Below, one piece after another: positions 28,192 through 50,840 of a stretch of 56,866 bases of DNA. Each line of letters opens with the position of its first letter. The first letter of the stretch is position 1. The DNA comes from Perkinsus chesapeaki ATCC PRA-425 (taxonomy: Eukaryota; Protista; Perkinsozoa), in NCBI GenBank assembly GCA_013115145.1, contig JAAPAO010000183.1, positions 1-56,866 of the forward strand, read 5' to 3'. A program made the position numbers and the translations under genes. The notes below the pieces were generated by a model. That model did not search any database, was not told the DNA's origin, and saw nothing but the letters and a program-made list of their open reading frames with translations.

Positions 28192-28506
28192 TCATTTAAC
28201 GCAATACTGTACATTGAATTGAACATGAGATACGCTTAAAGTGTGCTGGCTGATAGAAACGTATAGCGATGTGGCGTGAAGGAGGCTATGTTTAAAGCAC
28301 CTCCTGAAGGGGTGTCTCTTCACATCTGGCCATAATACGAGGGCAAAAGGATGTTCATCTTCAGGAATCGAAGACGCTCCGATCTCCTCCGGGCGTAGTC
28401 GTCTGTAGACAAGATCGTCTGGTCCAGTTTGCTGAATTGCCGATTCTATCGACAACTGATAAGTGGTGTCGATAAGACAGCCAATAAGAAGGAAAGATAT
28501 CCTCAT
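28192..28506 (-). CDS. Secreted GNAT-family paralog, first exon only (downstream exons not found; possibly truncated)
   Basis: MRISFLLIGCLIDTTYQLSIESA...DDLVYRRLRPEEIG matches the family leader at 40.7, 42.3, 47.7, 48.8 and 50.8 kb. Confidence 0.7.
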   Translation of the reverse strand: MRISFLLIGCLIDTTYQLSIESAIQQTGPDDLVYRRLRPEEIGASSIPEDEHPFALVLWPDVKRHPFRRCFKHSLLHATSLYVSISQHTLSVSHVQFNVQYCVK

Positions 28507-28749
28507 TTTCGATAAGAAACTTACAATTACAACTACATGCTTCAGCTTTCTTCATATTCCCCTCGAGCGTGAGGGCCCAATCAAGATGCAGCATAGGTCT
28601 GTCTGCTATGGTAAAGTCTCTTGGGTCGATGGGGAGGGGCGTGATGGAGAGTGCCGTCTGTCAGTGCAGATGTATATTGTCAATCGAATGTTACATGCTA
28701 GCTGTATATATTGCTGCTCCATCAGCCAGGTACATAGATACAGAAACTA

Positions 28750-29685
28750 TAATGTACACACGTGCAGCTTATTCCCTTGTGTCTGCGAGCATCAGGGTGT
28801 TTGTCAACTCGACACTTATGCCCGAGTGGGGAAAACTGCTTACCATTTCTGAGTTGGTCTGAAGCTTTTATAAGCAAAAATCTATTATGGCACCTATCGC
28901 CTGCGTGCGGACCAACTCCCACATACGCACATGCTACTTTTCTTTCGACAATAGAGAGACAGAGTTTCCCAATCTACAAGGACTCTAATCGAGAAAAATA
29001 GATAAATACCACAGCTAGTAACCACAGTAGCCCTACTGGCGCCACTGCGTCATCGTAGCAAAGAAATAATAACGGAAAATGACGACATAATCATCATTGA
29101 GTGGCTTATGTGCGGAGGGAGCCATCTTGTGGGGAAATAGTGAACTTCACGGTGCAAGCGGCGAGCCAGCACAAGCCTCATCCGCGAGCCCTTATCAAGG
29201 ATCGAGGATCAGGGTTGTGATAGACGTTCTGAGAATTGCTGACTGTTGCCCTTGTTCCGTAGCCATCTCCTTATGTAAAGGCACTGTTCAGTTCGTCAGT
29301 CCTCGAGCTTCTTCTTGTCACTGCTTAGTGAGCAGTGCTCAAAACGATATCAGTTCGTGTTGTGGTACGAGGACATCTCGACAACAAGTACCACAACAAT
29401 TATGTCACAGTGATGCTGTGACAGCGTGTAATACACAATCTGTCTATAATGCCCATGTGTGCAGAGACTTAGGCTGCCAACACATGTTGTGGGTCCAGAT
29501 TGATTTCTATCTTGACAGTAGATCTTCGGTGCGGAGGGGCGGAGCTCGCTTGTATTGTATATTGATAGTCTGCCCGTTGAAGGCTTCGAGAGAAAGCGAA
29601 AAATGTTTGTTGTCGGATTCGAACCTAGCTCACTCGAGTGAAAGCTCAGGTGCTTAACGTAGTAAGCTAAAGAAAACCGTTTCAT
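28750..29685 (-). pseudogene. Degraded GNAT-family-like copy
   Basis: Exon-like segment IGKLCLSIVERKVACAYVGV...RNG|gtaag followed by GNKLHVCTL, resembling the family's last two exons (cf. GNKLYIYKY at 49.5 kb). Upstream frames contain stops. Confidence 0.35.
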
Positions 29686-31322
29686 GCGGAGAACTACCTT
29701 GAAAATGTTTTCGATAGTCAGGGGCTTAGAATTTCAAGTTCGCTATATTTCTAGTGAGATCGCATATACATGTGAAGGAAAACGATATATCGCTCGTGGG
29801 GAAAGACACTGTGGTTAAGCCGGAATTTCTGCTCACGGACGGACGGACGCACACGAATGACCGCGCACTGCAGTATAAGGTCCGCTCGCTTCGCTCGCTC
29901 CGCAATTCTCCTGCTTTCCCCAGTGGGGAGTCCCTTCCAAGTTAAATCCGTAGGATTCGACGCGCGTAAAACAGCAGTGGGAGCGACCTGGTGAATCCTA
30001 ACGCACGGTTGCGCTGTGCAGCCTGCACACTATGGAGATTCCCCCGAAACCGGAGCGTCGCCCGACGGTTTCGGCGGTGGAATGGGACCGGGACGAAGTG
30101 TGCGCAGCGCGCTTGAACTACCATCTTGAGCTAGACGGCTGGCGACTTTTGAAGCACTGCCACTAGTGCTGCGGTGGCAGGGTCGGAACTCAGGTTACGC
30201 ACCGTCTGCATCACGCAGCGGTATCCCTGCTTCCCCCTTTTCTTTTTTTTTGCCAAGAGTGTGGTTGGGCCTGGCAGCTCAGCAGTTGTAGCCGTGAGGC
30301 CTAGTTGATGTCTCAATACATCATCTTAGCTTCTCACCTTGCAGCTGCGGTCCTGCTGGGTCTTCGGGCTCCCGTCAGCGCGCGTTTCATGTCTCATGAC
30401 TACGATCCGCTAGCTGGCCGCTGGTACCACCACGGGACCCTCGAACTTCCTCCAATCTCCCACACTCAGCGGTTTTACACAACTTGTCATGTGGGGAGGC
30501 ATCCGGGCAGCGCAAATTTTCAATAGGACTTGCATGAACCCACAAGTTGTATGATACGACAGCTACTGCACGGGCAAATCATCAGTGTCTCCAAAGTCAA
30601 CCATCCACTTTTCTGCGGTCGGTACTATCGACTCGGAAGCTACCGTAGCTCTCCAGAGGGAGGCATACCCACCGCCCGTACGTTAAAAGTAGCTCAGCTC
30701 ATTTAGCTGCACATGAGTCTCCGAGGGGGGGGGCTTGGTAGTGTAGGTAGTCTGTAAGATCAAGTCTTATCGTGGCACAGCCGTGGTGTGACACCACTGG
30801 CGTCCGTGAATTTACGATACAGATTTTACACTGCATTTATTATTTGATGCAAGAATAATACTCCCATTAAACGACCCTTTAGCCCAGTCTGGGCTGCCCA
30901 GATCATTTACTTGACCTAGTTCTAGCCCCCTATAGCCTAAGCAGCCTGCCAGGCCTTTCGGCTCAGACAGGCCCCCTTCGCGAACTCTTCAAGAGCGTCT
31001 ACACCGGAGAGTTAGAGCCTTCCACGAGATAACCTCTTCGGCAAAGTGTGGTCAACCTGGTCTGGATCCAATGCCGTCTATTCCACATGAGTGTTTGGTG
31101 TAAATTTGTATGTAGATTCCAGACATCCCATAGCAGCGACTAATTGTTATGGTTATTTATGTACTATCCCAACTCGTCCAGTTAAATATTACGAAGTCAA
31201 TTAACCACCCAAAATTCACTTTGTAGGTGACAGCAAAGCTTTGTGATTCACACGTAAGCGTTTGGGAACACAGAATGAAGCGGTAGAAGAGCTGGTAATG
31301 GTTATAGTTTACACTGTGAACT

Positions 31323-32306
31323 TTACAGTACAGACAAAAGATATAGAACAAAGAGAGGTAGCACGGTGACCGCAAGTGAAGGGGTCCTTCCATGAGCGTC
31401 ATTAGGCGTAGGGGCAGCTGTAGTGGATGCAGATGAAGAAGCTGTAACGTTGTTTAAGAGCCAAGTTAGACGAACACCGGCTTTCGCTAACTGCTCTTTG
31501 GCTACCTCGATGCGACCGTTGTAATAATCCATTGGAAGATAATCATTATCTCTCACAGCAGACCCATTAACATGCTTATAGCTATAATCACAGGCAGCTT
31601 TGGCAGTCTCATCAACCCACTTATCGATACACGCATCAAGTCCATACTTCTCACAGTCCTCGATCCATTCTTCAACATCACTGGCGTATCTTCCGCCTTT
31701 ATCAAGTTCGTCGCTCACAGCTTCTTCTGTAATTGTCCAGTATGGCTCACTAGGAGCGCGATGGCCTCGTCCTTGGAGCTCGTAAAGGAGAGCCGAGTCC
31801 CAAGTGGAATGGAGATTGGTATGCTGGTGGCGCGCGAAACCGAGATCGACATCAATATTATTCCCGCCCCGGTCCTTGGTGCGGCCGACATGTAATGGCT
31901 GATGAGCATCTCCCACGAAGTGTACAATGAACTTGAGGGCCTCTTGGCGTTGTTCCAAAGGAAGTGACTCGTCGACGACTCTTCTCGAGTAGTTCTTCAA
32001 TCCACCAGCAACACATACGTCGTTCTTACAGTCTCTGGCGTAGTTGAAGTGACAGTCAGGCGTGTCGGCATAATGTAGAGGAGAAGACCACTTCCATTTA
32101 TAGCCGTCGGGACCGTACTTGACATCATCAGCCCAACTGGAATAGTTAGTCATCGGAACACCTTTACCCATGATATCATCGATAGCATCTTGAGTTTCAT
32201 CTTTAATACGACCTTGACTAAGTTGTGCTACAACAGCGTGGCCATCACTTCCCCATGCAAGAGCGACAGGGACACCAATAGCTGCAGCTGATACTAGAAA
32301 GCGCAT
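31323..32306 (-). CDS. S1/P1 nuclease paralog H, with predicted GPI-anchor signal
   Basis: WGSDGH, WADDVK, HFVGDAHQPLH, LHSTWD; C-terminus SSSASTTAAPTP-NDA-HGRTPS-LAVTVLPLFVLYLLSVL. Probable start is Met40 of the ORF (32306). Confidence 0.95.
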   Translation of the reverse strand: MRFLVSAAAIGVPVALAWGSDGHAVVAQLSQGRIKDETQDAIDDIMGKGVPMTNYSSWADDVKYGPDGYKWKWSSPLHYADTPDCHFNYARDCKNDVCVAGGLKNYSRRVVDESLPLEQRQEALKFIVHFVGDAHQPLHVGRTKDRGGNNIDVDLGFARHQHTNLHSTWDSALLYELQGRGHRAPSEPYWTITEEAVSDELDKGGRYASDVEEWIEDCEKYGLDACIDKWVDETAKAACDYSYKHVNGSAVRDNDYLPMDYYNGRIEVAKEQLAKAGVRLTWLLNNVTASSSASTTAAPTPNDAHGRTPSLAVTVLPLFVLYLLSVL

Positions 32307-32452
32307 TATGAAAGATAAGCGAACAAATAACCAAAGGAAGTAGCATGCAAGACAAGACCCAAAAAACAGTTCGAGAGTGGATAACTTTGTTACACTCAAA
32401 TGGACTACTTCAACACAAGACACGTTGATGAAACCATAGTTTACGTGCTGCT

Positions 32453-35400
32453 TTAACAGACAGTTTCACTTTGCAAGTTTGTTCTCTCTGCAATTTTATT
32501 CCTTCGCATTATTTCATCATTCGCTCTCAACGCTTCCTTCGCCGGGATAACCACCATAACGCCGTTCACTAGCTCGAACGTCATCATAGTGTTTTCATCC
32601 GCGACTTCCTCTATTTTCATCACTTCGTCAGCGAGCTGCTTCAAGTTCCTCACCTGAGCATCACAGGCAGCTTTGAAACGGCCAGGAAAAATACAAGATA
32701 CTTCCACTCCATTTAGCTTGGACAATTGGAGACATTTAATATCGTGATAACCCACGGTGAGTTCACTGGCTAAAACCTGATGAAGGATCACGACCTCATC
32801 ATCGACGGACTTCCGTTGGCCATGCGACCACAGCCCACACAGACGTATCTGAAATACCAGATCTATCAAAGGTAACTAGTGTAAATTCTATGAACATATC
32901 TATGATAAGGTCTTATTTGTATTTAATATGTTATATAATCAAGCAGTGTGAGGAACTGCATCACCTCTATACTTCGTGCATCGCATACTGCGTAAGAATC
33001 GTGCCGCGCGATAATAAGCAAGTGATGTTGAGAAAAAAAGCGAAGCAGCTGTTCGGCCGACGGCTTACTGGAGCTTCTGACTCGAAGTTGTCGCCGTATT
33101 CGCATAACAGGAACGGTTCAGTGAGCGGCAGGAAGACCAGCCCGGCAACTATGAAGTATTTGGGGCCGTATCTTGGCTCTACTGGAACAAGTGGCTCGGA
33201 TTTGCTGAAAATGAAACACTGAAATCGTGCAATCGCCGACAATCGGTAACGGGGCTGAAGTATCCTTGTGGATAGCTGGGGGCCATAGGTCAAAATCTAG
33301 CGGGTCCAACGGCAAAGTTACACAGACGGCTAATTGCAGTGATCCTCGAGAGAAATCTTCAAAGTCTGAGTCAGTTTACACAACTTCATTTCCTAGCAAG
33401 CAGGCTCATTCCGGCTAGTGGATCGTTTATGGATTCAAAACTAATGGAATCCATTGAACGGATATTCCAAAGCTGCTCCGAGGTAAGTGAGATCGACGTT
33501 ATGCGCTCTGACAGTTAGAATGCTTTGTTTTCATCGTTTGAAAGAAACACGGTTCTGTCGAGCCTGGTGTGAAAGGCATACGACAGTTAGTATGCTACCT
33601 CAGTTTAAGGTCAAAGTGCTGAATGCTATGATCTCTAAACAGCCCAATCTTTACAGTATCACCAACAAAGTGCCGCTGTAGGAGGTAGATAAAGGGAATC
33701 CTTTCACCCTAAAAACATACGCAGTGAAGATGGGGTGCTCCAAGCTGGCTATTCGATGGTATCAATGTTGAGGCGATTTCACTTCCTGATTTATAATTGA
33801 CTAATTCACGGCCATCGCCAGCATAAGTCAACTGAATTGGCGTTCACTTCTTCAGCTTAAGTAAGCCAACCCTGGTGTGCAGTAGACCACATTCACCAGC
33901 AGCTCCTAACTTAGGAGTCCTAAGGCCCTCACCTGTCTGAAAGGTACGGTCCCATCATTAGCAATCTGAGAGCTATCAATATTCGTTACCACGTCCCCAA
34001 CTTTGAGTATCTCCGCTGCGGGAGCAGTAGAATCAATTCGACGAACTCGAACTCCTGTAACCTATGCAGAAAAGGACGCGATGCAGAATAGTCATAGCAG
34101 CGAAGCTATTCAACTGAATCTACAGGTATTGCTAGGAATCTTGTCGTTGTAAACAACTTATATAATCTGTTTGCTTGAATAGACATAAATTTTTATTATA
34201 TAAATGCACCCGGAAACGAAATAACACTGATCTTCTTCATAGTGCCACGAGGCTGGTGGTTATCTCATGGATTGCTTAACTGGTATACTGTTGACAAATT
34301 CCGTTGTGCCTAGTAAGGATGAAAGCAATGATACATTTTGCCGTGGCGCGTAACGTTCGATAATTGATCCAAAGTATCCGTGTGAATCTCCCATCCATGG
34401 GCCGAGAATGCTGCAGACAAACTCGTCCCACTACAGCACGGTCACCGTGCCACGGTGTGAACATTTCTCATCTTGAACTCCGAGTCCGGTAATAGACTAA
34501 CGCACTACTTACACTATTTGGCATACCCAGATCCTTCCTGATATATGCTGATTCAAGTGGCTGGAAAGCAAAACCTCCGTCACCGAAACCAGTGTACCTT
34601 GGAAAGCGAGGGGAAAACTGGCACCAAATAACAGACGAACACTTGGAAGAGATTCAGTGAGGTTGTTAGAATAGCTCCGCAGAATGGGTTCCGAATCAGA
34701 ACTTCCGATGTATGCCTACACCTTGCTAGCTTGTCACCGACAAGTCGCCGATAAGTGTACGGCATACCGGCTGCGATGGGTATACGAAGACGCTAGATTA
34801 AATTTTGATAGAACGCTGACAGTAGGAAGAAGCGATCCATGACGAATCACGACAATCACAACTCTTTGGCGAGATCTCCAGCCTAGTAGTACAGCTTTGG
34901 TGCACCGCGAGACCTCAAGCCCTGAATCCGATCTTGCCCATGCGAGAGAGGCCCGAATCGGGAGTTCCGATAGTGTCGAATTTTTCTATCGGGGCGATAT
35001 CGATTGCTCCTAGCTCAACATGTACCGCTTACTTGCCATGCTTATGAAAGTCTTCCAGGAAATGCTTGACAATCTCGGTTGGTATAATGTAGCTGATGTT
35101 TTCGGTGCCTTCTCCTCTTAGTGCTTGGAATGCCACTCCGATACACCTGGACCCACGTCGCTCGCCACTTAGTCAGGAGAGCTCCTTACCTGCCATTATT
35201 GTCTACTGCTGGGCCGCCGCTGTTCCCCGGGTTAATTGCCGCGTCGATCTACAAGAGTTGATTTTGCAGTTGAAATGGAATGATTGGGTGACCTGTATTG
35301 CGAGAAGCTTTGGTGCTCCTGCTGAGCCGTGGGCGGTGTACTCTTGTAGGTCGATGCGGCTAACGACACCTAACATATACGCTATGATTCGGAAACAGAT

Positions 35401-38400
35401 CAACCAACGACCCCGGAGATGAATCGGAAAACTCAACTTCAGGAGCCTCTCCGAGTAACACCACACGACCCCGCATTTCGCCAGTTCGAGGCTTGATGGA
35501 AACAAATTCTGATTTTTATCGTCGTTCGCTTCGCTGCTTCTGAGTCCTTTCAGCGCTTCACAAATACCCTGTCCACGGTAAGTTGCCATAGAACCTTCGG
35601 TAACCAATTCAGCCGCGAGTCACGGTAGAATCAGCTCAGAGTATATGCAGAGGAAAAAAAACAAGCGTCATTCTGTGCCGATGGTCATCGGGGCTGCTGA
35701 TGGGATTCACATTCCAATATTAGCCCCAAGAGCGAACAGAGCCGTACTAATCAATAGCAAAGGGTGGACAAGTGATAATAATAGGGCGATGTAGAATATG
35801 GATGGTTGCACACGTCACTTTGACTTGCGATCGCCAGGGACCTCTCAAAACTCCCCGGATTTTGAACGAATTGCCCACTCGCAGTGCATACATATCCGTA
35901 TTTTCCGCGCAGTCAGACTACTGCCCTTATTTGCACCGTGCTAGCCTCTGAACGCCGATGCGCAGCCACTGCTGACTTGTCCAGTCAGCTCTCCTCTCCT
36001 CTGGGTTTCAGACTCGGAGTTTAAGATACGCGGCCAGAGTCTGGCCGCCAGACTCCACGCTTTTTCCACCAGTTCAGCTGTGAGGACTAATGAGTACTTG
36101 CAGAGACCTGGTAGAACATCAGCCTTGCCTTCTACTCGGATGTAAGAGTTCCCCGCAGCTGTTTGTCGACGAAGTTGGCGAGAAGGTGGTAAAGGTTTAC
36201 GCACTCTTGAAGCAATTCTGGACCCAATGTTCATGCATACAACAACAAGTTGGTGTCACCAAATAAAAATCTCTCAAGTGGCAAAATTCCGACCGATCAG
36301 CTTGCCAGCCATGTCTTGCAAGCGTGGTTTGGTCTGTGTGAGCGCGAGTCTGTTCATAGAGCGCCCTACAGCGATCGGAGGGATGGTGTAGCCATGAAGC
36401 CATAGCGAGCATTGCTAGAATTGCTAGAATTGTTAGAATGACCAATGATGGCCCAAAGCTAGATGAGAAAAGCTGCCCGGCCGAGTATGCTCCTATCATG
36501 GGCCTCAAAAAAAGTGTGCTAACGTTCCGTAACGGAACTTCCGTTTTGACTCACCTTGAGATACCGAGGTGTTGTCTCCTCCGACAGGATATCCGACAAC
36601 AGTCACATCGTCACCGAGTTTCTGAAAGAATTAATGTTAGTCTAAATACTGTGTTTTGCGTTTAACACCTTTGTATTTGAAATTCAAACGGTAGCGCATT
36701 TTTCATACTAAAACATCAGGCATTCGCTTGGAAAGTTTTCTAGTCAATGCCTGATCTTTCAATGAAAAATTTCCAATGATGAGAGCGCCTTCAATTCCTG
36801 AAGAATACTCCGCTGGAGCGCTACTGATACCAAGGATCAAGTGACAGAAAGTAAGCGTTTAACTATATTGGATGAACTCGCGTTGAAACACTGTATGGAC
36901 GGCTTTCCTGAAAATGATACTATCATTTATAGATGCGCGTAACATAGGACTCTTCCGTCGACTCTGCTCCAGATTGGAGCCTCCAGTAATTTCACAAACT
37001 GGAAGGGATGTCATTGTAGTCTTGAAGCAATGCATTCATAGATTTCGCGCATTGAAATTCCCTTTACGAAATGAATTTTGTGGCGCTTCAAAGATATTTC
37101 ATTCTCTCCGCGCGTACACGCGAGTATGTTCATTTTCCATTTCCAGTTAAGGAGGACAGACAGCTTACTGGTAATCGCCTAGCTAGCTTAAGTGCTTCCA
37201 AAGTGCCCCAGAACTCTTCCTCTGACTCTGTGTTACCCTAAAAACGTCCGTGAAGTCCAATCTAAAATCAGTGCATATTGCACCAAATCGCTGTGATTGT
37301 TTTTGAGCTGCTGCGAAGGACTCGAGAACTACTGTAGCTTCGCCCAACCTAGTTCTAGCCATCATGTACATATAAGGCCGACCAGCGCTTCCGTGATGGA
37401 ATACAAATTGCCGACGGAGAAAACCCTATTTCCAAGAAGTATAACGATAGCAACAATTGCAACTGTGAGAAAATTTGGGAATCCTGATGGGCTTCGGTAT
37501 CTGCAAGCCCTTAGCGGCATGTATAACCGTAAAAGATATACATATTGAAGTACTATCATTATGAGTGATACCAATCTTACGTCAAACACAGGCTCCAAGA
37601 TGGCCAAGTCGCACTCCGATGCAACACAGAGTGCTCGGCAAACTACCTTCGCAGAGCTGCCTCGAGTTTTCACCTGAGAATAATAAAGTTGAATGATTCA
37701 ACTTTAAGAAGCCTGGTTCAAGTTAATCGCATATAAAATTCGGCCAGGCACAGATCAACGCCGATTTTGAGTGTGGGATTATATTCTTACCTGTATAACT
37801 GCAGCGTGATTCACACTGTGTGCGTTAGTGAGCAAAAGTCGTCGGGATGCGGCACCCATGCCATTCATTGTAAACGCAAATGCAGTGGATGTACCTGAAG
37901 GAAAAATCGTTGTAACAAAATCTCTGATGATGACTGGATATCTGAGGCTTCGAGCTCCAAGGAGCAGAGTAGTTGGGCTCGGAATGCGTGCAAAAAACCT
38001 GAACGAAACAGAAAATTCCACCATCTGGTCCAGGATTCTGACCCTGAATTTGAGTATAAACGAAGTAAACCGAACTTGAAGCACATCGAGTTATTGCAAG
38101 AATACAGCCCGACGCAATAAAATAGAATAAAATACGAAACATTCTATTTCACTGCGTCGGCATGTATAGAAATTAAGGAAACGGGAGAAAGATAGGCAGA
38201 ATTTCTGCCACAGAAACACGGATTAGAGAAGCCGAATAAAAGAGTGATCCTGGGAGGGAATCCTCGATCGAGGGACAAGAAGCATTTCTGCCGCGGAAAT
38301 ATAGAGACAAATTTCTTCTCACTATACGACGGTTCATCGAAACTATTCCCTTCAAGAGAATCCCTCCCAATTGGCAGGTAATCCCCAAGCTAATTCAGCT

Positions 38401-39486
38401 GGCCCAATTGTGCCGTTAAAATCCGAGCATGGAAACGCTCAGCGGGAGAGCTGGCTCTCACCTTCACAACACTGTTGACACCAGGCTGGTCAGTGACGGA
38501 CTCATCGAGGGCCCCATCAGAATCATCGCACGTAGATGGCTGCACACTGAAGTAAACACAGCTCGCAGAACCGTATGTCTTCAAAGGTTCTCAGCATCTG
38601 CGTGCCTTGGCCCAAGCGATAGATATTTTTGTCCGATACAGTTGCTAGAGTAGACCATAGTTTTATGTTTCAGAGAATATACTGGTTCCCTCTGACGTTT
38701 CCTGCTGAGCGTTCAAACATATTTAAGTCTCACAGCACGCAGCATGGGCACTAAAACGTCCACAGAGAAAATCCCACTGAATGCAAACCAGGAAAATATA
38801 TGAGTGGCGTCTTCCTCACGTTCGACTCCCCAACGACCGCCTCGGCGTACTCGGCAGGCGGTATCGTTCCTCTGCGTTGCTGCAACGTGAAGCACCTAAT
38901 ATCAGATAAACATTAATAAGCAGAAGAAAACGCCGAGAAAATTCCGATTACAGGACGGAATACCGATCGTGTTTCACCAACTATTGACACAGTAGTACTG
39001 AGCTTAGCCAAAGTCCCGGTGCTAACGTTGTACATTTGGCTGTTTGTTTGTATATTCTCTAGCAGGCTGACAAAGATGATTCTGTGTTGCAGCTAGAGCA
39101 AGTCTGAGGGTATTGCTATTATTATTCAGCGTATAATCGAAATTTCACTTCCTTTATTCCATTTTTTATTTATTTCTCCTTCGAAGTATTGTTTTGATAC
39201 TCAGATTATACAGAACTAAACTGAAGTCTATGCAAATGGACGACTTTTGTTTTGTATCGAAATTCATACTTTCAGAAATGATGGTAGCATACGAGCTTAG
39301 AGAAACTTCTGAACAAAAGCCTTTCACTATTTTCGAATATATAAAGACCATTTAAACAAAGGTGAGCGTTCAACAAGGTGAATATCCAGTTCCACATTCA
39401 CGTACGTACTACGTACCTTCATCGAAGTTTTCTCGTCTCCGTTTGCGAGGTGATAGGGGGACGAGCAATGGGTTGGTCGAAGACAT
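32453..39486 (-). CDS. Multi-exon Deg/HtrA (protease Do-like, plant DEG2/DEG9-type) serine protease with two PDZ domains; start approximate
   Basis: Exons: NSVVK|VFCTHSEPNYSAPW; LLLTNAHSV (His); ECDLAIL (Asp); EEFWG; VTVVGYPVGGDNTSVSQG; GVVSRID; IDAAINPGNSGGP (Ser); ISYIIPTEIVKHFL; GVRVRRI...NDGTVPFRQGERI; PKYFIVAGLVFLPL; QVLASELTVGY. Candidate start MSSTNPLLVPLSPRKRRR at 39486. Confidence 0.93.
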
Positions 39487-39797: not shown

Positions 39798-40686
39798 TTA
39801 GCCGACTATGTGGGGCAAACCTGCCTTCGAAAGGACGGTAATATTGAAACACAAAACTATGAGGAAGTGGACATCTGGCATTTGAGTGACGCATGGTAGC
39901 ATATCATCAGCTTGACCGGGGATGGACAGTACGGAGGAAGAGGTCGGATGAGCGGCGATCTGCCAGAGGAACAGTTAGTCTGATGGCACCACACTTGGCG
40001 ACAAACTTACCAGGATCTTCTCCAATAAAACTGAAGCCTTGTTCTGCACGCAACTTCTCGGCGAATTCCCGGAACGTCTTCCTTCTTTTGGCAGTGAAAT
40101 ATAACGCTACGGTATCAGGTAGTCTTTTAAGTATCTAATAAGTGATCTTGGATGGCAATGATAACGTTTTGAATGATTCAATAAGTTCAATTTGGATCGC
40201 ATAGCGCGATGGCGTGCATACATCTTCGACTGCTAGCCTTAGCATTCTTGACGCTACTCCTTTGTGTTGCCATGCTTTGCGTACTTCGGTGCTTGCTATA
40301 TATATAACGACACCGTTTCTCTCGGGACTAAATCAAATTATTGATGCGGCGATCGAGATTGAATGCTTACAGCTCAGCAAGTACTGCCTCAAGGGGGTTC
40401 TCCTCTATCTTCCATATGACATTTCCCACGACACCCTGAATCGCACCACTGAAGACGGCCAGGCAACGTGTGGAACTACATCAGCAGATTCGAAGCCAGC
40501 TCCTTTCTTCACAGCGACGAAATAATGAAGTGCGGAATGGCTCCGGCCACCCCCTTCAAGAAGTGGCCCATATTCGAGATCATCAGCAGTTAGTTCGGTT
40601 AATGCCTTGGATTGTTCGGCTGATTTTATCGATAATTGATAAGTGACGTTGATAAGACAGATATTAACAAGGAGGGAAGCTCTCAT
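39798..40686 (-). CDS. Secreted GNAT-family acetyltransferase-like protein (multi-exon; 3' end approximate)
   Basis: Leader MRASLLVNICLINVTYQLSIKSA; motif A exon IYIASTEVRKAWQHKGVASRMLRLAVED; next exon ILKRLPDTVALYF...GFSFIGEDP|gtaag. Confidence 0.8.
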
Positions 40687-41524
40687 TAATAATAGTGAGA
40701 TGATACTGTACGTAGGGTAAGATACTTGTCGTAGCACAGTAGCTGGCACAGGCAGACAATCGCATGAACCTCTATGGCTGCTCGAACGCTCCACAAATAT
40801 TCTCAACCAGGCAGGAACAGTCAGCGGGTTTCTGGCCATCGTCCAAATTGAGCTCCTTCGCATTTATACGAGAAGTCATTTATTTGAAGGTTACCTCGCG
40901 CAAAGAAGACGATCGGTTCAAAGTCAATGTAACAATGTATACAAAAAAGCGTTCTTCGGGGCGCTAAAAATGTCTCTGATAGGATCTCCTCCGTGGAATG
41001 TGTTCCTGGAGCAAGAACAAGAGTCCAGTGTGTTCTGTAACAGAACACAACAGAACTTCTGTTATGACCACCGTACCACTATACATATCAATATAGTGCA
41101 TAATATACAACCGAAATGAAGTTAACAATACATGATTTTAATCAGTTACCGAAGTTTCGAGAATTCTGAGGCAGAAATAGTCAGTAAATGATGATGGAGT
41201 GCCGCGAACATTACCGTTCAACACAAAGCTGGATGAAATGAACACCCGACAACTTAATCAGATACACAGACGGAGTGTCTTTCGATCATAGAAGAGCCGG
41301 TCAGAAAGCGGGTAGCTGAAGCGTGGAGGCTGCGGTCGCCATGCGAGTCATTATTGTGCCGAGAAGGACGTACTAAGCCGGTTTTGCAGCGATGTTAATA
41401 ATAAAACTTGTGCAAGGTCCTTTATAGTTAGACGTAGAACACGCTTCGGGATCGCCGTTATTTCACGCGGCATATAGAAAATATATGGAAGGCCTTCGAG
41501 TTGTGCATTATCTTCGTTTATGTG

Positions 41525-42264
41525 TCAGCTTGGATATTTGTAGAGATAGTATTGGTGGCCGGAGGTTTCTGAAAATATACTGAATAACAGAGATTCACTT
41601 CCATATCATTTGGCCAATGGATCATCACAATAACTTACCTGGTTCACCTAAGGGAATGAAGTTATTTTTCTTATACAGTTTAATGGCGGCCACATTATCA
41701 CGATGAACTCTCAGATAAACTGCTATGACATTCGGCCATTTAACTTCCATCTGTTGCAGAAATATATTATTAATATAATATTCTCGACACACATCTTTCA
41801 ACGCTAATGGTAACATCTTAGATGCTACTCCTGTATCTTGCCAATCTTCGTCCACCTCTAAGATTTCTATAATCACAACACCATCCTTCTCCGTCTTCCC
41901 CGGACTGACCAAACGTAACCTTTCATATCGGAGGCATTCCTACAGGTTATCTAGGACGATTCTCGGCACCATCTGAGTCAAGTATGAGCAAACCCATGCC
42001 TTCACATTCTGAAACGAGCAGCCGTTGTCTGGCTTAAGACTGCAATGCCTATACCTCCTCTGTTCCTCTCCGATGGAGGACAGCTCCGAAAACGTGTTCA
42101 AATTCAGCAATTGACGAGTAACCGACTTCCTCGGCAAGTAAACGACTATATTCAAGATCTTCAGCAGTGAGATTGGTTAATGACTTTGACTGTTTGGCTG
42201 ATTTTATAGATAATTGATAAGCGATGTTGATGAGACAGATTATAAGGAGAAGGGAAGCTCTCAT
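41525..42264 (-). CDS. Secreted GNAT-family acetyltransferase-like protein (multi-exon)
   Basis: Leader MRASLLLIICLINIAYQLSIKSA; IEILEVDEDWQDTGVASKML; WPNVIAVYLRVHRDNVAAIKLYKKNNF (motif B); last exon ETSGHQYYLYKYPS*. An in-frame upstream ATG lies at 42294. Confidence 0.88.
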
Positions 42265-42559
42265 TAATAATAACACTGCTAACTGATATGACATACAAGC
42301 CTGACCGACCTCACGCTTGGAAAGCGCCGTTGCGCAGTGTGCGGCTCATGACTACAGTTGCTATCACCGAGCCCTACAGCCACTCCACACTGTTAATTGC
42401 AACTTGAGCTATCGGCAAATATTCGAGCACTCGCCACGGAACTTCATTCCCTCTGGGAGCAGCAAAACACCAAGAAGCGGCACAAACAGACAGTGTCACT
42501 AGATTTCCATGAAAATTTTCTGCACGTAGCGAGGTCATCGCTCTCTACTTTGCGAATTG

Positions 42560-44361
42560 CGCACCTTCCCTCAGGTTTCAGGTTGCCTTCTCCTCCTTCG
42601 GGTTTCAGGTTGCCTTCTTCTCCTTCGGGTTTCAGGTTGCCTTCTTATCNNNNNNNNNNNNNNNNNNNNNNNNNNNNNNNNNNNNNNNNNNNNNNNNNNN
42701 NNNNNNNNNNNNNNNNNNNNNNNNNNNNNNNNNNNNNNNNNNNNNNAGGTTGCCTTCTTCTCCTTCGGGTTTCAGGTTGCCTTCTCCTCCTTCGGGTTTC
42801 AGGTTGCCTTCTTCTCCTTTGAAATTCCGTCGTACTTCATTCGCTCCCAGTGGTGCCCGCCACTAATAAAATGTGTGTAACAACTTAAGAAAACGACACA
42901 GCGCCGCCGTGGTATTCGCAACAGACATTATCACATCATGTCCAGTGATAGTATCATACCACAGAGCAAAATGGCGAACATAATGGTTGATGTATTCTAT
43001 GGGGGGGCGGTTTACGACTTAGTTACAAACTCTAGGAACGTCTGCGAGTTTTTTGACAATTCCATGGACATTCAGCGACACGGTCTGGCGATGTCCCAAT
43101 AAGCAACGCTTGCTCGGAAGGAATTTCAGCCCGTGATCGGCATGCCTGTATTTCACAGATCGTTCACATCTGTTGGCAAGTCGAAGAAAATCTAATATAT
43201 AGCTTAACATGGTTGCCGGACTGAGATTGAGCCTCGAGGGCTACAGCTCTTTGACGAGGAGATCGATCCATGTTCGGTATGACATGTTCCGTTCACTAAG
43301 CAGTTCAATTCGGAGAACGACCGATGAAAAACAACACGGGCTATTGTAGACGAAACGCAAAACCTACGAATAGGGTAGTAATCGGTTGATAAGTAAACAT
43401 GAACATATTATATAAGCCTCGGAGGAACAAGTGATTGATGAAAGGTGTCACCAAACTTTGAAGAAGCGACCCGATCCGGGTAGCTGGGGTGCGAGTTTGG
43501 TCATCACCGTGGGATACGAAATGATGGCGCACCACGAATCGAAAATTCCGACATTCGAGAATAGCAACCGAATCAACTCTCGACAGAGCAGGGATGGCGC
43601 TTCAACCCAGAGCGAGTAAGATGGAACTGCCTCCATGCTGATTTTCGAGTCGGAACTCGCGAGTGCGTGAATTGTTCCCAGAGCATGCTTGATTGAGGTC
43701 TTTTGGTATAGATCATAACATGAATCTCAGACTGAAAATCACACTTAGCAATCGACCGTTGCTCACCTTTTATGGGATCTGCCCGACAGACAGGAAAGTG
43801 ATAGATGTGAGAAAGTATCTACGTAACAGTTTATCGAGTTATTATTAATTATCGTTCAATAATACCAAGTTGATAATCTATAATCACACTAAGTTTTGGA
43901 CCCTTATACGGTCATTTCTACACCACAGTGATTTTCTAGCTTAGCGCAACGTGTGTCTCCACGTTCGAAAGAGACAGGAGTTCAGAGTGCTATATTACAC
44001 TTAGCAATCGTTTAACAGTATGTGATAGCAAGTACAAATCATTTCCCAAGGGTAAGCCGAGCTAGAGTTCTTACTCGTATCATCATCGCGGACGAAGTAT
44101 CCCAAATTCGGTATTCTCTGTACACTTGGTATGGAGTTGTCCATGCGAAATGACCCATCCAAAAAAGAAGCATCCATCATGTTCTCGTCCGCATTCCTTT
44201 CGATGGTAGCTGAAGTTGCGACGTTCTGGAGAAACCGGATATGCGTTTCTGGGTGGAGTTGAAAGATATTTTCCAACTACCGCTAAGAAGCTACCCATCA
44301 AGCAACTCGACAGCGAAGAAACTGACTGCAGGAGAATAAACCAAAGTAAAGCACGCGTCAT
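42560..44361 (-). CDS. Hypothetical multi-exon secreted protein with acidic (PEG[E/G]EGNLK)n repeat
   Basis: Signal-like MTRALLWFILLQSVSSLSSC at 44361; exon-like frames at 44001-44276 and about 43250-43540; repeat exon bounded by ag|...|gt. Linkage of these exons is inferred. Confidence 0.4.
42574..42819 (-). repeat. 27-bp tandem repeat, collapsed by an assembly gap
   Basis: Unit GGTTTCAGGTTGCCTTCT(C/T)CTCCTTCG on +, head to tail with no spacers, on both sides of the N run. Confidence 0.92.
42650..42746. other. Assembly gap (97 N)
   Basis: Run of N. Confidence 1.
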
Positions 44362-46566
44362 CGAAAACGCGTGCTTGCTGCTAGCTATTCATTTATTCGA
44401 TTTCTTATTCGATCTTCGCGAGATCGATATACCTTAATGATCGATAGTATCGATCATACTATCGATTCGATACTACGCTGATAGTATGATCGATACGAGA
44501 CACATACCTTAATCAGGTTACCTTATGAATTACTCCTATCATGTAGCCCAATACACGGATTACACAATTGAAAGTTTGGACAATATTTTCTATGCACAAC
44601 AGGGAGATGTCATTCACGAGCGAAATAGAAGATGCGAAGTTCGGAAATGAGAATAGTTCCAATAAACTTTATCATCGATGCTTCACTCGAGCGAAAATGG
44701 TTCTAGGAGTGCTGAGGAGAGGTCAGCCGCCTAGTAATATCAATTTAGTAGCCTTGGTAGCCGTTAATTTCACTAGAATCGGCGCTTCAGGCGCGCGAGC
44801 CACTCCCCCTTACCTTCCACATAAGTCGAGCTACTGCGCCATATTCTGTTGACTTCTGTGGTGAGCATGCACGGGGAGCAGATCGGGATAATGACAAAGG
44901 TAACTGAGAAGGGAAGCTGCGTCATTGTAAAGTAGAAGAAAATTCGAAAAAAAGAAGGAAATTGGCATGACGTTTTGTGGAAGCAATTAGAAATAATGAC
45001 GAGGCTTAAAAAGACACCTTACTATGGCACGCGACATATCGGCATATTAATAGTATTAATAATTAACAGCTGAGTAATTAATCGTCCTCCATTCCTTCTA
45101 TTGAGTGAATAGTACTAAGTTGATACTGTCATATAGTGCATAATAACACATATATTCTATATCTGAATACCCGTCTCGTATAGTTACGAATCGCTACCGA
45201 AAATCCGCGAAAGAACATAGCCGACAGATTCGGTGGAGGAGGACAGAAATATGGAGCTCATCTCACACGGTCCAAACTCCTCTCCGTACGAATGCCTTTG
45301 CCGTCCGTGGAGTCGCCAAAATCCTGAGAATTCATAAATCATGCCAGACGACAACGCACATGCACCGGCTTGGGCGTAAAACGGTTTTCCAGCAGTGTAA
45401 AACGCGATGTAGTATGCACTGAAACCACAGCGCGTTCTAACACCTGCGCAAAATGCCGTCGTCACTGCGCGTTTTAACATCTCGCGTTTAGCGCGCAATG
45501 GGTGTTAAATCGGACAGCTGACGTTGCGTGATCTGACGTACGTAGAACGCCGCGTTTTTTTCATAACGAGGGGGCATCATTTATGTACATGCTTGACTAC
45601 ACACGAAATTAGAAGCGGGAAATTTTAAGAAATCCCGGTATATTTTTAAAGTGTGTTAAGGAAGAGACGTTTTACGACCATTCGCTAAAAAGGAGGTCCA
45701 ACTCCTGAGTGAGACTGGTTGATGAGGCAGTCATAGAAACAATGCCAGATGACCCCAAAAGGAATGCATCTGATACTCTTCCCGGTCAAGGAAGATACTT
45801 TTTGAATTCATATTAGGAATGATTCCCGATACATTGTCATGTGATTTTCGTGATGCTATACGGACCAATGTGACAGATATTCCAATACTGAAGTACAGGA
45901 CACAATTCATTCAACTCACTCTCATGCTTCTCGAGGATCTCCACGGAACAACTTGGAAGATCGGCAATCTATTCCGAGACGATCTAGACGAAGACCTGAC
46001 GTGATAGAAGGCATTATTTCACCAAGCTGTCAACACTACCGCATGACATCATCGACGTTGCGAGCACGTTTTCGTCGAACAGGATGACCGTGTGAGGGCA
46101 GAGGAATAAGGCTTGATGGGAACGGAGGAGTTGGCATTTGTAATGCAACCCTGCCGCCAATCGGAATGTACACCAGCAATTGCCAACAAGTCCCCCTGTA
46201 CGACCAGGCACAGTACATGCCATGCAAGCACTTGATTGTGTGTGGGTTTATAGTCCAACACCAAAAATGCCTCGGACTACCAATTCTATGTACAGCTGCC
46301 GCGAAGGTTTAATATCTTGCACTTTGGTAATCTTTTAACACAACATCAGAACAAAATTCACATCTAGCAATTGTGCAGGTTATGTCGGTTAGCAGTGAAT
46401 GCCCATCATAGATTGCATGTGACCGTCCGCGCCTCTAGCGAAGACACAAAGACAAGTTAGCGCTCCTCCTTGTTGTTGGTCTTCGAGTCTCCAATAACAC
46501 CCAGATTGCTGATTTCTATATTCCTTCTAGAATCTCTGAATTACCGTCGCCATGACACTGGCGCAC

Positions 46567-47700
46567 CTACATAACATCCGCTTTTGGCAACTTGAGAACA
46601 TACAAGTCATGCTGGGATGAACCTGATTACGGAAAACTGAAATATAACAGAAGGAAGTGCATGTTACCACCAGAGGCCCTCAGGAGGTACAGTACGCGAC
46701 ATCTAGAGATGCGCGGTCTGGAGTCCAGACCGCGCATCTCTAGGGTAAATTTTTTTTGTCGAGTTAGAGCGGGGCAAGCTCGATTTATGGGTAATCGAGT
46801 ATGAAGAATTCAATAGAAAAGAAATTACCTCGAAATTCGACATACTTATCGATAGTTTTGCCCGTCCAGACCGCGCATCCCTAGATGTCGCGTACTGTAT
46901 ACGATTGCTGTTTCCTTTTGCCTCTGAGAAATTTCCCTAGCAAGATTTCGGTTGCATCTTCACACTTTAAACATTCCTCCATCCTCGAGGAGGAAAATCA
47001 CACTCTCGTGGGGCTTGATGAAACCCTGTCGCTAAGAGCTACCCGGGTCTGCTCCCACAAACTCAAATCCGTTGTGTTTCACGTAAAGACTTCTAGCGGC
47101 TTCATTGAATTCGGTGTCCCTTTCAATCTTCAAGTAGGCCGCTATAACGTTCGGCCACTTCTGTCGTATCTTGCACGTGAATTGGTAAATTGCTGACATA
47201 ATAATAATGGTGACATACATCTTCCAAAGCTAATGGTAACATTTTAGATGCTACTCCTTTATTTTGCCAACCTTTGTCTACCTCAACCCATTCAATATAA
47301 ACAACATCATCACCCTTCCTTTTTTCAGCACTGAAAAATACAACGTAATTTATCACGAGCCGTGAAGGTTATTTTTACAGTTGCTTCAACACAGCTTCTG
47401 TTATGTTTTGGGCAAGTTTGGAGTAGACAACTCCTTTAACATTCTGGAATCAGCAGTGCTAATATTCCGCCGCGTGTTCGCGCCACTTACTTCCATTTTC
47501 TTCCCCCCATGAAGGACAGCTCCGAAGACAAGTTCGCTTCCAAGAATCAAAGTCTGACCGACTTCCTCGGCACTCAAACGCCTATAATCAAGATCATCAG
47601 TACTTAGTTCGGTTAGTGGCTTAGACTGTTTGGCTGATTTTATCGATAATTGATAAGTAATGTTGATAAGACAGATGATAAGGAGAAGCGAAACTCTCAT
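46567..47700 (-). CDS. Secreted GNAT-family acetyltransferase-like protein (multi-exon)
   Basis: Leader MRVSLLLIICLINITYQLSIKSA; YIEWVEVDKGWQNKGVASKML; IRQKWPNVIAAYLKI...NEAARSLYVKHNGF; last exon GSSQHDLYVLKLPKADVM*. Confidence 0.87.
46690..46897. mobile_element. 208-bp MITE of Tc1/mariner type, in the last intron of the 47.7-kb GNAT gene
   Basis: 33-bp TIRs CAGTACGCGACATCTAG(A/G)GATGCGCGGTCTGGA with one mismatch, flanked by TA on both sides (46688-89, 46898-99). Confidence 0.88.
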
Positions 47701-48086
47701 TTATACCAATAACAGAATGATAACTGTCATTGTGGAAAAATTTTCACAAGTACCTAAAGGTGGTCACCAATAAAAGGAAGTTTTGTAAAGTTCTACGACT
47801 GCTCGATAACTTTTTAAGTATATTGGAAATACACACGCAACAGTCCAACAACGCAACACAATCTGCAGAGTCAACATCTGTAACACGTGATTGCAGCACG
47901 CAACATGTGACGCGGACAGGACAAGGGTGACACATTATTAAGAACATCACTTCCAAGATAAAGAAAAGAGACACCTACGACTATGCTGTGGTGTGCTCCT
48001 GGTTGAAGGAGGTAGGATACTTGTACAGATATATAGCTCGTCCGGAAAGGCCCGAAAAACACCACAAAACCTGAAGAAAACGGGAA

Positions 48087-48854
48087 TCAATAATATGCAT
48101 GCAGTACATCCTCAAGAAGGGGAGGTTTATCAGCCCTTGTAGATCTCAACAGCTTCCGAGTCCTACCTGGTTCCGTAATGGCGGTGAAGTTATGCTTCTC
48201 GTAGAAATGTACTCTAATTTTATAATACTTTTCGGCATCTTCATCACTATTGTCGACTTCCAAGTACACTGCTATAGTGTTCGGATACTTGTCTCGTATC
48301 TCACAGATGTAATCATTTATCGATGTAATCATTTGTATATATAATAATACATCTTTCAATGCTTTTGGTAACATTTTGGATGCCACACTCTTATTCCGCC
48401 AATCAGGATGTACCCAAATATAATCAATGAAAATAGCATCATTTTCGTCTTCCCTCTCAGGACTGGAAACACGATTTTGCCATGAGATAAATAACTAGAA
48501 TCACGTACAGTGCGGCTAGCACTGCCAGCGGGGCACGCCGTTCCTTGTACCACATCACATACCCAATCGTATCCTGACATAGTTGCCTAATACGTCTGAG
48601 ATGCATTCCTGGGAATTCACTTCCTTTCTGTTGATCTTCTTTCCTTTCTCTACAGCGGCAAAGTAGTGTCGCTTAGACATGAAATCTTTTTCCGTCAATG
48701 GTCTATATTCAAGATCGCCAGCAGTTAGCTCGGTTAATGGCTTCGACTGTTTGGCTGATTGTATCGATAATTGATAAGTGATGCTAATAAGACAGATAAT
48801 AAGGAAGAGGGAAGCTCTCATTAGTAATAATAACAAAATGACAACTGTTGTCAC
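48087..48854 (-). CDS. Secreted GNAT-family acetyltransferase-like protein (multi-exon)
   Basis: Leader MRASLFLIICLISITYQLSIQSA (ATG at 48821, in-frame upstream ATG at 48854); AIFIDYIWVHPDWRNKSVASKML; IRDKYPNTIAVYLEV...FYEKHNF. Confidence 0.85.
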
Positions 48855-49519
48855 AGGAGCGTACTATCTACAATACTTCGCGACCAACATTAGGGAAGAA
48901 CGGCGACCCACGGAGGAGGGCGAAGGGAAACAACGAACCTAACGATGGATAATAAGGAGAAAAATCGATTCGAATGCGAACCAGGAAACGGCGCCGACTT
49001 GTGCGAAGTAGTTTTCATCCTCTTGCTCGGAATGTGTGAGCCATAGCTCATTTGCTAAACGATTGTGAAGAGCTGCGGAATAATGAGCAGCGAACTGTGC
49101 GGGAGAGCCATAACCTCCTCATTGGTTTCGTTTTTATGTCAATAATATACAATATAACAGTAAGACACATCGACCACCATATGAACGTACCAGGTATATA
49201 GGGAAGCTTCCGATCAGCAGCAAACAGCATAATTATTCTTACAAGAGCAAATGTATTTTGCTATGATAATATTGTGATAGAACGCAACCAACTGAAGCAT
49301 GAACAACATCACACACATGATTAATAAATATAGAGGATTGCATAACATCATAAACGCGAGGCATGTGGATAACATTCAGCACTATCATCAAAGTGCAGTA
49401 TGATAAATATTAGTAATATGGGTTATTACTTATATGGTAAGGTACACATCAAATGGTGAAAAGGAGTCAATATAAAATGAATATAATGAATATTAATAAA
49501 GTAGGCATCTGTAGTGTTA

Positions 49520-50840
49520 TCATTTCTTCTTGCCGAGGGGAGAGTATTTGTATATGTACAGCTTGTTACCAATAAATTCTGAGAGGAATGCCGAATGTGG
49601 CCACGAGCTAGCGCCATCAACCCTACCGTAGTCTTCTCCAATATACTTGAATGTGCGACGATCCAACGGAGCAGCGGCAGTGTCACCACTCATAGATACA
49701 ACCACGAAGGTGAGCTCTGGATGCTGGGCCTTAATCTAAAACGTGGATACTCCTCAATGCATCATCACCATTGAGCTGCTGCAGTACGTAGTCCACCGTA
49801 GCCAATATCTTCTCAGTTCCTCCCACATCGCCTGGTTTGTTAACATATCTCAGGAAGGCGGTGACTTTCGAGACGACCATCTTTTGGCTGAACCAAATTG
49901 TCTTCCCAAAATGGAGGTAGGAAGGAGCGGCCTACATGTCTCTTCTTGCATCGGAGGAAATAGCTGGTAGAGACTGCAGGAGTTTCTGCTGAGCCTAAGA
50001 TGAGCCGGATGATACAAGGTAACTTCGTGGATTTACTTCGTATGAAGTGGGACTATCCATAGAAATGCATGACAGGAGGGAAGCATCTCGGAACGCAGGG
50101 AGCTTCAGACCACATGACTTGGGGACACTTCCTGTGTTTGCAACGGGGTAGTGGAACTTGTAAGTCCCTCCGTGACGTGAGTGGGAACCTAGTACACCGG
50201 CATCAGAATAATCACCAAAGCAGGTTGCCAATATGAGCCACAGGAAATAGGTAAAGGCAATAGTTCAGTCGGCTTCATATGGAAGAATGCGAAGTTAACT
50301 CACCATCCGGGAAAAATCCAAGAGCCTCAATCTCCTCCGAAGGGTCATCCGCAAGTACATACATATGGGCGATTTTCACTTCTGGCCACTTCTCACGCGC
50401 CTAAAATGACCAGCATTCGATAGTGAAGATTTGTGAGCCAGTACGTCAATGAGTGCTAGTGCTATCAACCTAGCTTCAATCCCTTTGTTTTCCCAATTCT
50501 TACGAACAGAAAGGAAAAAGTGAACGACTTGAGGATTCTCTTGAGTGGCTTCGACATATCCCACACTCTGAAATGAATTACTTACACTTGTTAATCATTC
50601 AGCTACCTCCTTCCCGTTTGGTGATGGAGCCGAAGCTTTCAGGATAAATCTATCTGGAACTTCAGATGTAGAGGGAAAAAGCTTCTCTCTTTTCGCGGGT
50701 TCATATTCAAGATCATCAGCACTTAGTTCGGTTAATGGCTTAGACTGTTTAACTGATTTTATCGATAATTGATTAGTATTGTTGATAAGACAGATAATAA
50801 GGAAGAGGGAAGCTCTCATTGATAGAATGACAACTGTCAT
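49520..50840 (-). CDS. Secreted GNAT-family paralog, divergent, possibly with two GNAT-like domains
   Basis: Leader MRASLFLIICLINNTNQLSIKSV; FFLSVRKNWENKGIEARLIALAL; AREKWPEVKIAHMYV; second set IKAQHPELTFVVVSM...FKYIGEDYG|gt and GNKLYIYKYSP. Confidence 0.7.

Follow-up and report, generated by a model that had tools for sequence, protein, structure and literature searches.

What would acetyltransferase-like genes do that open with a secretion-type leader? Acetylation of proteins at the expense of acetyl-CoA is generally regarded as cytosolic, and genes of this kind form an array on contig JAAPAO010000183.1 of the clam parasite Perkinsus chesapeaki (assembly GCA_013115145.1); the window analysed here is this entire contig (56,866 nucleotides (nt)). 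An earlier note, made from the sequence, had described the array as a family of GNAT acetyltransferases with signal peptides and had taken it for a parasite effector family; the observation was confirmed, and the interpretation was partly supported. We arrived at a probability of about 0.6 for the following statement as a whole: the array belongs to a Perkinsus-specific family of GNAT proteins resembling N-terminal acetyltransferases (NATs), its leader evolves in concert, and its products acetylate targets of the secretory pathway. The identity and anatomy of the family alone are held with high confidence, and the acetylation of proteins in the lumen is a tentative proposal somewhat short of even odds. 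Acetylation inside or beyond the secretory pathway is the most likely role, and the family offers a concrete candidate class for such an activity in a myzozoan parasite.

A six-frame motif scan of the window yielded exactly six leader exons (copies A to F; Table 1), all in minus orientation within the interval 28.5-50.8 kb, in agreement with the earlier count of at least six near-identical leaders, and GNAT exons follow the leader in five of the six copies (B to F). Gene models were built by reading each copy in three frames and joining exons only at GT-AG sites, and the spliced proteins were scored against a family hidden Markov model (HMM) built only from public Perkinsus proteins outside the window. 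Copy C reached 139 bits, followed by D (124), E (112), B (71) and the first module of F (37). The middle exons measure 65/112/112 nt in C and D and 65/106/124 nt in B, with introns of 39-130 nt. Since the public model of a paralogue on another contig, FOL47_005876 (198 amino acids (aa); exons of 192/65/112/112/116 nt and introns of 44/57/44/71 nt), matches this plan, the intron layout that had been noticed in the five copies is independently supported as common to the family.

The copies are in different states of repair. Copy C (introns of 39-70 nt) carries all the features of the family, namely QDTGVA, AVYL, LYKKNNF and the YYLYKYP ending. In copy B, whose introns are all GT-AG and 43-87 nt long, motif A is intact (QHKGVA) and the tyrosine of motif B is replaced by Arg (LR for LY). 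Copy E has lost the first intron, and in its motif A (RNKSVA) Ser replaces the first Gly, as had been read earlier; the conserved IYLYKYP ending is reached only via a weak acceptor of the last intron, the usual acceptor shifting the frame off it. Copy D has the motifs QNKGVA, AAYL and LYVKHNGF, and the last exon of the family was not found at its expected place, which lies 51-130 nt downstream in the other copies and is occupied in D by an element resembling a miniature inverted-repeat transposable element (MITE). The sole in-phase continuation of D, an exon at 46923-46703, was rejected because its '..RIQYATS..' tail comes from the terminal inverted repeat of this element and bears no similarity to the family. 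In copy F, where all introns are GT-AG and 39-115 nt long, the first module has a degenerate motif A (ENKGIE), and its motif-B helix is missing. The degradation of motif A that the earlier note had pointed out for this copy (WENKGIE) is thus seen in two copies, E and F. A second, very divergent module of F is reached through four more small introns and ends in KLYIYKYSP, and the public fused model FOL47_001442 is collinear with the gene as modelled here (tblastn E 4e-6 for 49735-49631). The second module was not significant against the family HMM and was rejected as a GNAT; the only signs that it is related to the family are the phases of its exons, its KLYIYKYSP ending and its similarity to the middle part of FOL47_001442.

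The breaks of frame between motif A and the KWPNV strand in D and F were considered as frameshifts or assembly indels. This was rejected, as they coincide with the family-wide GT-AG introns of 44-49 nt, so that a small fourth intron explains the apparent frameshifts. In addition, positions 46800-50900 are covered by short-word assembly contigs of a DNA run with no differences and no indels, indicating that the frame features of D, E and F are not long-read indel errors; the sample of this run is possibly the assembly's own source, so the comparison excludes assembler indels and does not represent an independent individual. Copy A consists of the leader exon only. It was recognised by tblastn with residues 1-63 of C and D (52-54% identity, E 5e-13), its end at 28324 is a putative GT donor, and neither tblastn nor a direct reading of 27450-28540 found a GNAT exon downstream. 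These data indicate a tandem but interrupted array that evolves by birth and death and is partly decaying: A is a leftover leader exon, and only C, perhaps also B and E, has a complete reading frame of the family type.

The catalytic part of these genes was assigned on several grounds. Pfam PF00583 scored 22.9 bits on the exon 3-4 read-through of copy C (cut-off 20.7), and 26-36 bits, likewise above the cut-off, on several homologues. Motif A in the form Q/R-x-x-G-x-G/A was found in B, C and D, with Ser for Gly in E, and was not found in F. The AVYL...LY.K..F segment resembling motif B is present in C, D and E; the earlier assignment of this segment to all five copies does not extend to B, where the tyrosine is replaced, or to F, where the helix is missing. 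When the family profile was compared with solved structures, the best matches were Sulfolobus Ard1 (SSO0209; E 1.3e-7), Arabidopsis NAA60 (2e-7), NAA50 (2e-6) and human Naa60 (3e-5), the alignments to Ard1 and Naa50 running from β2 to β6, and weaker matches included spermidine and aminoglycoside acetyltransferases. The AlphaFold model of the paralogue FOL47_005876 (pLDDT 80, core >90; pTM 0.74) leaves residues 1-20 disordered, as expected of a leader. Its top Foldseek matches were human and plant Naa60 (probability 1.0, E 2e-7, template modelling (TM) score 0.55-0.65), and its Atlas neighbours were all GNATs, Naa60 clusters included, so the fold that the earlier note had expected is the one predicted for this paralogue. 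By profile and by modelled fold, the family thus consists of small (~180 aa) GNAT acetyltransferases whose nearest relatives are the NATs Ard1, Naa50 and Naa60.

The resemblance to these enzymes has clear bounds. Naa60/NatF, a membrane-associated enzyme of animals and plants that ranks first by fold and near the top by profile, has in common with the family motif A (Q/R-x-x-G-x-A), the β5 strand 'YL.V' and the α4 segment 'LY.K..F'. However, identity is only ~15%, and in the alignment with Arabidopsis NAA60 the position of the β5 His is taken by Arg, Lys, Glu or Thr, while the β4 Tyr is kept in only some copies (Tyr in D and FOL47_005876, Ile in C, Phe in E and His in F). The Perkinsus proteins also differ in having neither the Tyr-Tyr loop nor the C-terminal amphipathic membrane helices of Naa60, copies B, C and E ending ~2-12 residues past the last strand, and carry an N-terminal secretion-type leader instead. 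Ard1 and Naa50, in contrast to the Perkinsus family, are cytosolic and have no leader, and the His88/Glu127 pair of Ard1 is not conserved in the family, Glu occurring at the second position only in copy E. The closest solved structures are therefore to be read as a resemblance, with orthology not established; on present sequence comparisons the family is neither a Naa60 orthologue nor an orthologue of any other of these NATs. The substrate is not readable from the sequence.

The leader follows one plan in all six copies: Met-Arg, then a strongly hydrophobic core of 9-11 residues, then a small-residue site after residue 22, where the predicted cleavage site I-(K/Q/E)-S|(A/V) is conserved throughout. 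The uncharged stretch comprises 18-21 residues in B to F and 10 in A, and the 9-residue hydrophobicity maximum lies at 2.5-3.4. By rule-based assessment, the positive n-region, the short hydrophobic core and the small residues at -3/-1 are those of a signal peptide, and the leaders are comparable to those of the nucleases in the window, in which the Trp at the mature N-terminus fixes the point of cleavage. Full-length relatives from P. olseni likewise open with hydrophobic leaders of different sequence, which suggests that a secretory start is a property of the family. The first strand of the domain (DLEY) stands directly after the leader. A conserved S-K-P-L-T-E-L (residues 26-32, e.g. 47605-47625 in D) is found directly after the predicted cleavage site, and within it K-(P/A/S)-L-T-(E/N) at residues 27-31 recalls the x-L-x-E core of apicomplexan export motifs, with Lys in place of Arg. 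A PEXEL/TEXEL motif proper (R-x-L-x-E/Q/D) was rejected, since the Arg position holds Lys and the motif does not occur in every copy, A and some of those on other contigs lacking it. Targeting to a plastid by a bipartite leader was rejected as well, only ~10 acidic residues lying between the predicted cleavage site and the first strand.

Conservation of the leader extends to the nucleotide level. The leader DNA of copy E matched that of B, C, D and F at 84-89% identity (E 1e-38 to 1e-42) and that of A at 80% over 50 nt, and the shared 5' module of ~145 nt consists of ~30 nt of 5' untranslated region (UTR) and 39 codons. Two other contigs of the assembly hold four (L002, 7298-11700) and three (L001, 591-6900) leader copies, so that the block recurs in 13 copies on three contigs, with an identity peak of 0.82 against a background of 0.15-0.3. 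The conserved stretch begins ~30 nt upstream of the start codon and covers the first ~120 nt of coding sequence; outside it, identity is at the background level. The L002 leader copy near 7323 has CTG where the start codon is expected. The 5' edge of the block is a conserved (A/T)CAG|TT, aligned in all 13 copies (10 CAG, 3 TAG), and this conserved YAG, ~26-33 nt upstream of the leader starts (e.g. 48847-48852, 47726-47731 and 50840-50845), may be a spliced-leader acceptor. Copies D and F have an upstream ATG just 5' of the YAG, which trans-splicing at this site would remove.

Silent sites behave in the same way. Synonymous divergence (dS) is 0.22-0.44 over the 39 leader codons, compared with 0.57 to saturated over 41 ungapped core codons (β4, motif A, β5), and silent sites are saturated over the rest of the genes. 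The ratio of nonsynonymous to synonymous divergence (dN/dS) is below 1 in the core (C-D 0.26, D-E 0.58), which argues for purifying rather than diversifying selection on the well-aligned GNAT core. The closest pair differs by segment, being D-F in the leader and C-D and D-E in the core, and third-position GC in B to F shows a modest AT shift in leader codons 1-39 (0.28-0.38) relative to the rest of the genes (0.43-0.48). Both dS and identity thus bear out the earlier observation that the leader is far more conserved than the catalytic part. The faster divergence of the catalytic regions, which had been emphasised, is a real contrast, but because silent sites and the 5' UTR are conserved too, it is largely the product of a homogenised or nucleotide-constrained 5' module, with core dN/dS below 1. 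It does not prove that the enzyme is under diversifying selection. The comparison of copies points to concerted evolution of the leader module or constraint at the nucleotide level, and the locus is a clear case of a 5' UTR and leader evolving in concert while the remainder of the paralogues diverges to saturation. Conotoxins and frog skin peptides are secreted families with a conserved signal sequence and a divergent mature part. The Perkinsus family is like them in that the leader is conserved even at silent sites and the mature part diverges, and it differs in that theirs are short toxins or antimicrobial peptides under diversifying selection, whereas the Perkinsus mature part is an enzyme fold with a core under purifying selection.

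In order to delimit the range of the family, an 88-aa query was run with HMMER against 1.8 billion cluster representatives, and no homologue outside Perkinsus was found at E 1e-3. HMMER and a word-indexed profile search returned only proteins of P. olseni and P. chesapeaki, and a word-indexed search with P0008 alone matched only P0008 itself. On these searches the family appears to be confined to Perkinsus, which answers the question of taxonomic range that the earlier note had raised. The homologues are mostly 'hypothetical' in public databases, although UniRef automatically names some P. olseni members 'N-alpha-acetyltransferase 60'. The earlier statement that no description exists therefore holds in that we found none in the literature of secreted or lumenal acetyltransferases in Perkinsus, and does not hold in that the proteins are already public as hypothetical proteins.

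The public gene models of this genome fuse or miss such small-intron genes. No stand-alone model covers any copy between 21.3 and 42.3 kb; instead, a 995-aa model on the minus strand runs from beyond 42306 to 32453 and has Pfam matches to GNAT, Trypsin and PDZ. If this annotation were right, the GNAT exons would be the N-terminal part of a large protein with a trypsin-like protease and a PDZ domain, as the single public model with its three Pfam matches has it. However, B and C each have their own stop after the conserved C-terminal ending, like the stand-alone 198-aa paralogue model, and models that fuse several genes occur often in this family (P0002, P0006, P0009, P0014), so that we consider a true fusion very unlikely. 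The 995-aa model is probably chimeric, joining B and/or C to a separate HtrA/Deg-like protease gene, the PDZ-containing end of which is the open reading frame (ORF) at 32453-32869.

For the preferred reading, that of secretory-pathway acetylation, the following mechanism is proposed. The leader would carry the nascent protein into the endoplasmic reticulum (ER) and then be cut off, and the soluble enzyme would use acetyl-CoA imported into the secretory pathway. It would acetylate amino groups on proteins of the secretory pathway, most likely the new N-termini that processing creates, and could do so in the lumen or on the way out. Paralogues would differ in substrate preference; where the cofactor motifs are broken (F, perhaps also E and B), the copy would be either an inactive binder or a gene in decay. 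The mammalian enzymes NAT8/NAT8B (ATase2/ATase1) are lysine acetyltransferases of the ER lumen fed by the AT-1 acetyl-CoA transporter. They resemble the proposed arrangement in having GNAT domains on the lumenal side with imported acetyl-CoA, and they differ in being membrane-anchored, while the Perkinsus proteins are predicted to be soluble with a cleavable-type leader.

Among myzozoans, N-acetylation of secretory proteins is widespread in Toxoplasma and Plasmodium (PMC10038149), and an ER acetyl-CoA transporter has been described in Toxoplasma (PMC11557232). An ER-resident NAT, TgNAT8 / Pf3D7_1437000, is known in Apicomplexa and was discounted as the enzyme for exported proteins; the enzyme that acetylates these, the 'PEXEL NAT', is still unidentified (PMC10038149). 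The premise of the earlier note that GNATs are normally cytosolic must therefore be softened, acetyltransferases of the secretory pathway being not unheard of. The Perkinsus family is like TgNAT8 / Pf3D7_1437000 and the 'PEXEL NAT' in concept, its members being putative acetyltransferases of a myzozoan parasite that would reach the secretory pathway. Unlike TgNAT8 / Pf3D7_1437000, it is multi-copy and confined to one genus, with no non-Perkinsus match at the above threshold, although the sequences were not compared directly. In a more specific version of the proposal, the products would be soluble lumenal NATs acting on N-termini of secreted proteins that signal-peptide or maturation cleavage has uncovered, with the 5' module kept uniform by gene conversion or a function at the mRNA level. 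This version is rather unlikely; if true, these would be the first genetically recognisable soluble lumenal NATs in Myzozoa, and would serve as a model of the enzyme, still to be identified, by which malaria parasites acetylate processed export proteins. As P. marinus can be transfected and edited (PMC8062965), localisation and function are open to experiment.

A number of observations weigh against secretory-pathway acetylation. Among the five copies with GNAT exons, all except C (B, D, E and F) have at least one defect, and the structural model is that of a paralogue from another contig, 41-62% identical to the exon translations of the window, rather than that of a protein encoded here. The family does not keep the residues at the catalytic base positions of Ard1 (His88, Glu127) and Naa60 (Tyr, His); the paralogue model lacks the Tyr-Tyr substrate loop, and its first and second helices are much shorter. 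Because of these three features, NAT activity is far from certain. The signal peptide was called by simple rules only, and the uncharged stretch of 18-21 residues might also serve as an anchor that stays uncleaved. The copies show no ER-retention signal, and the mechanism presupposes a supply of acetyl-CoA in the Perkinsus ER. Finally, none of the RNA runs checked for the locus holds it, so splicing, expression and use of the leader start codons are inferred.

Three other accounts of the function start from the same features. The secretion-type leader and the want of a retention signal would equally suit host-directed effectors, secreted inside clam haemocytes, reaching the host cytosol and acetylating host proteins with host acetyl-CoA, with diversification in an arms race. 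The lineage-specific expansion into many divergent paralogues in a parasite, the position of the array beside other genes of secreted enzymes (S1/P1 nucleases, GH20) and the combination of a conserved leader with a divergent mature part, the pattern of secreted arms-race families such as conotoxins, speak for this idea as well. However, no translocation signal or machinery is known for Perkinsus, dN/dS is below 1 in the well-aligned core, the leader contrast is largely an effect at silent sites, and no support from expression or secretome was found in the RNA runs or the literature. The effector label of the earlier note had been drawn from the divergence pattern alone and was not upheld, the leader being conserved also at silent sites and in the 5' UTR, and we regard host-directed effectors as unlikely.

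If the N-terminus were instead an uncleaved anchor, the proteins would be Naa60-like enzymes on the cytosolic face of the ER/Golgi, where acetyl-CoA is plentiful. The top fold match to Naa60, which is itself membrane-associated and cytosol-facing, the 18-21 uncharged residues and the three lysines after the hydrophobic core agree with this topology, but the strongly hydrophobic core, which includes an Asn, is no longer than 9-11 residues, hydrophobicity averaged over 19 residues is borderline (1.2-1.8), the core is followed by a conserved cleavage site of small residues, and Naa60 anchors via C-terminal helices that are absent from the copies; such an anchor is improbable. The active site bears on a further possibility, that of acetyltransferases of the secretory or vacuolar system or of the medium acting on small molecules such as polyamines, cell-wall amino sugars or host antimicrobial amines. 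With helices 1 and 2 shortened and the Tyr-Tyr loop missing, the site would be more open than that of NATs, and the weaker profile matches to spermidine and aminoglycoside acetyltransferases and the GH20 hexosaminidase-like gene among the neighbours point the same way. The best sequence and fold matches are nevertheless consistently to protein NATs, and there is no acetyl-CoA outside cells, which leaves small-molecule substrates about as doubtful as the anchor.

Table 1. Positions of the six copies and of other features discussed in the text (window coordinates).
Feature	Position	Strand	Leader start codon	Exons	Basis
Copy A, lone leader exon (leader, first strand, first helix region)	28324..28506	-	28506		Motif scan, tblastn
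Copy B, 5 exons, 184 aa, complete reading frame	39907..40686	-	40686	40686-40480, 40435-40371, 40327-40222, 40134-40011, 39959-39907	GT-AG models, HMM 71 bits
Copy C, 5 exons, 180 aa, fully canonical	41525..42264	-	42264	42264-42055, 42008-41944, 41904-41793, 41750-41639, 41568-41525	Models, Pfam, HMM 139 bits end to end
Copy D, exons 1-4 intact	47043..47700	-	47700	47700-47491, 47443-47379, 47330-47219, 47169-47043	Models; HMM 124 bits over residues 5-165 only
Copy E, 4 exons, 187 aa	47981..48821	-	48821	48821-48559, 48462-48351, 48299-48167, 48036-47981	Models; HMM 112 bits over residues 5-182
Copy F with second module, 8 exons, one 303-aa frame	49520..50819	-	50819	1-4: 50819-50607, 50567-50445, 50400-50304, 50188-50037; 5-8: 49994-49936, 49887-49788, 49735-49627, 49578-49520	GT-AG models, collinearity with public model
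MITE-like high-copy element, 212 nt, 35-nt terminal inverted repeats	46688..46899	no strand			Repeat analysis, word depth
27-nt minisatellite, unit TCCTTCGGGTTTCAGGTTGCCTTCTTC	42567-42819	no strand			Tandem Repeats Finder, direct reading
GH20 hexosaminidase-like gene	23041-27181	minus			374-aa public model, start 27181

The terminal inverted repeats of the MITE-like element beside copy D (46688-46722 and 46865-46899) are 97% complementary, and a perfect palindrome of 20 nt lies inside the element. In the DNA run the element reaches a word depth of 1377 against ~77-83 beside it (~18x), in keeping with many copies in the genome, and several other contigs match it with 4-6 differences. Upstream of copy C, the only N run of the contig is an assembly gap at 42650-42746 inside the 27-nt minisatellite, the unit of which flanks the gap on both sides (42567-42646 and 42747-42819, Tandem Repeats Finder). 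The gap is intergenic, ~390 nt upstream of the copy C start codon, and no exon of the family spans it; the ORFs that cross it are the translated 27-nt repeat.

Besides the acetyltransferase-like genes, the contig holds the GH20-like gene, the trypsin/PDZ protease gene, a large long terminal repeat (LTR) retroelement at 13.9-19.1 kb and intronless S1/P1 nuclease genes, which form a tandem array at 1-13.6 kb with one further copy at 31.3-32.4 kb. The GH20-like gene shares the orientation of the lone leader exon A and is found 1.1 kb downstream of it. The idea that leader A supplies the signal-peptide exon of this gene was unsupported: the public GH20 model has its own start at 27181, other hydrophobic starts exist there, a 1.4-kb intron would be unusual in this genome, and neither the public model nor a local reading gave evidence of splicing between the two. 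Most of the complete S1/P1 nuclease copies at 1-13 kb end in a cysteine-rich module, and the copy at 31323-32423 has a hydrophobic tail at its end instead (..LPLFVLYLLSVL).

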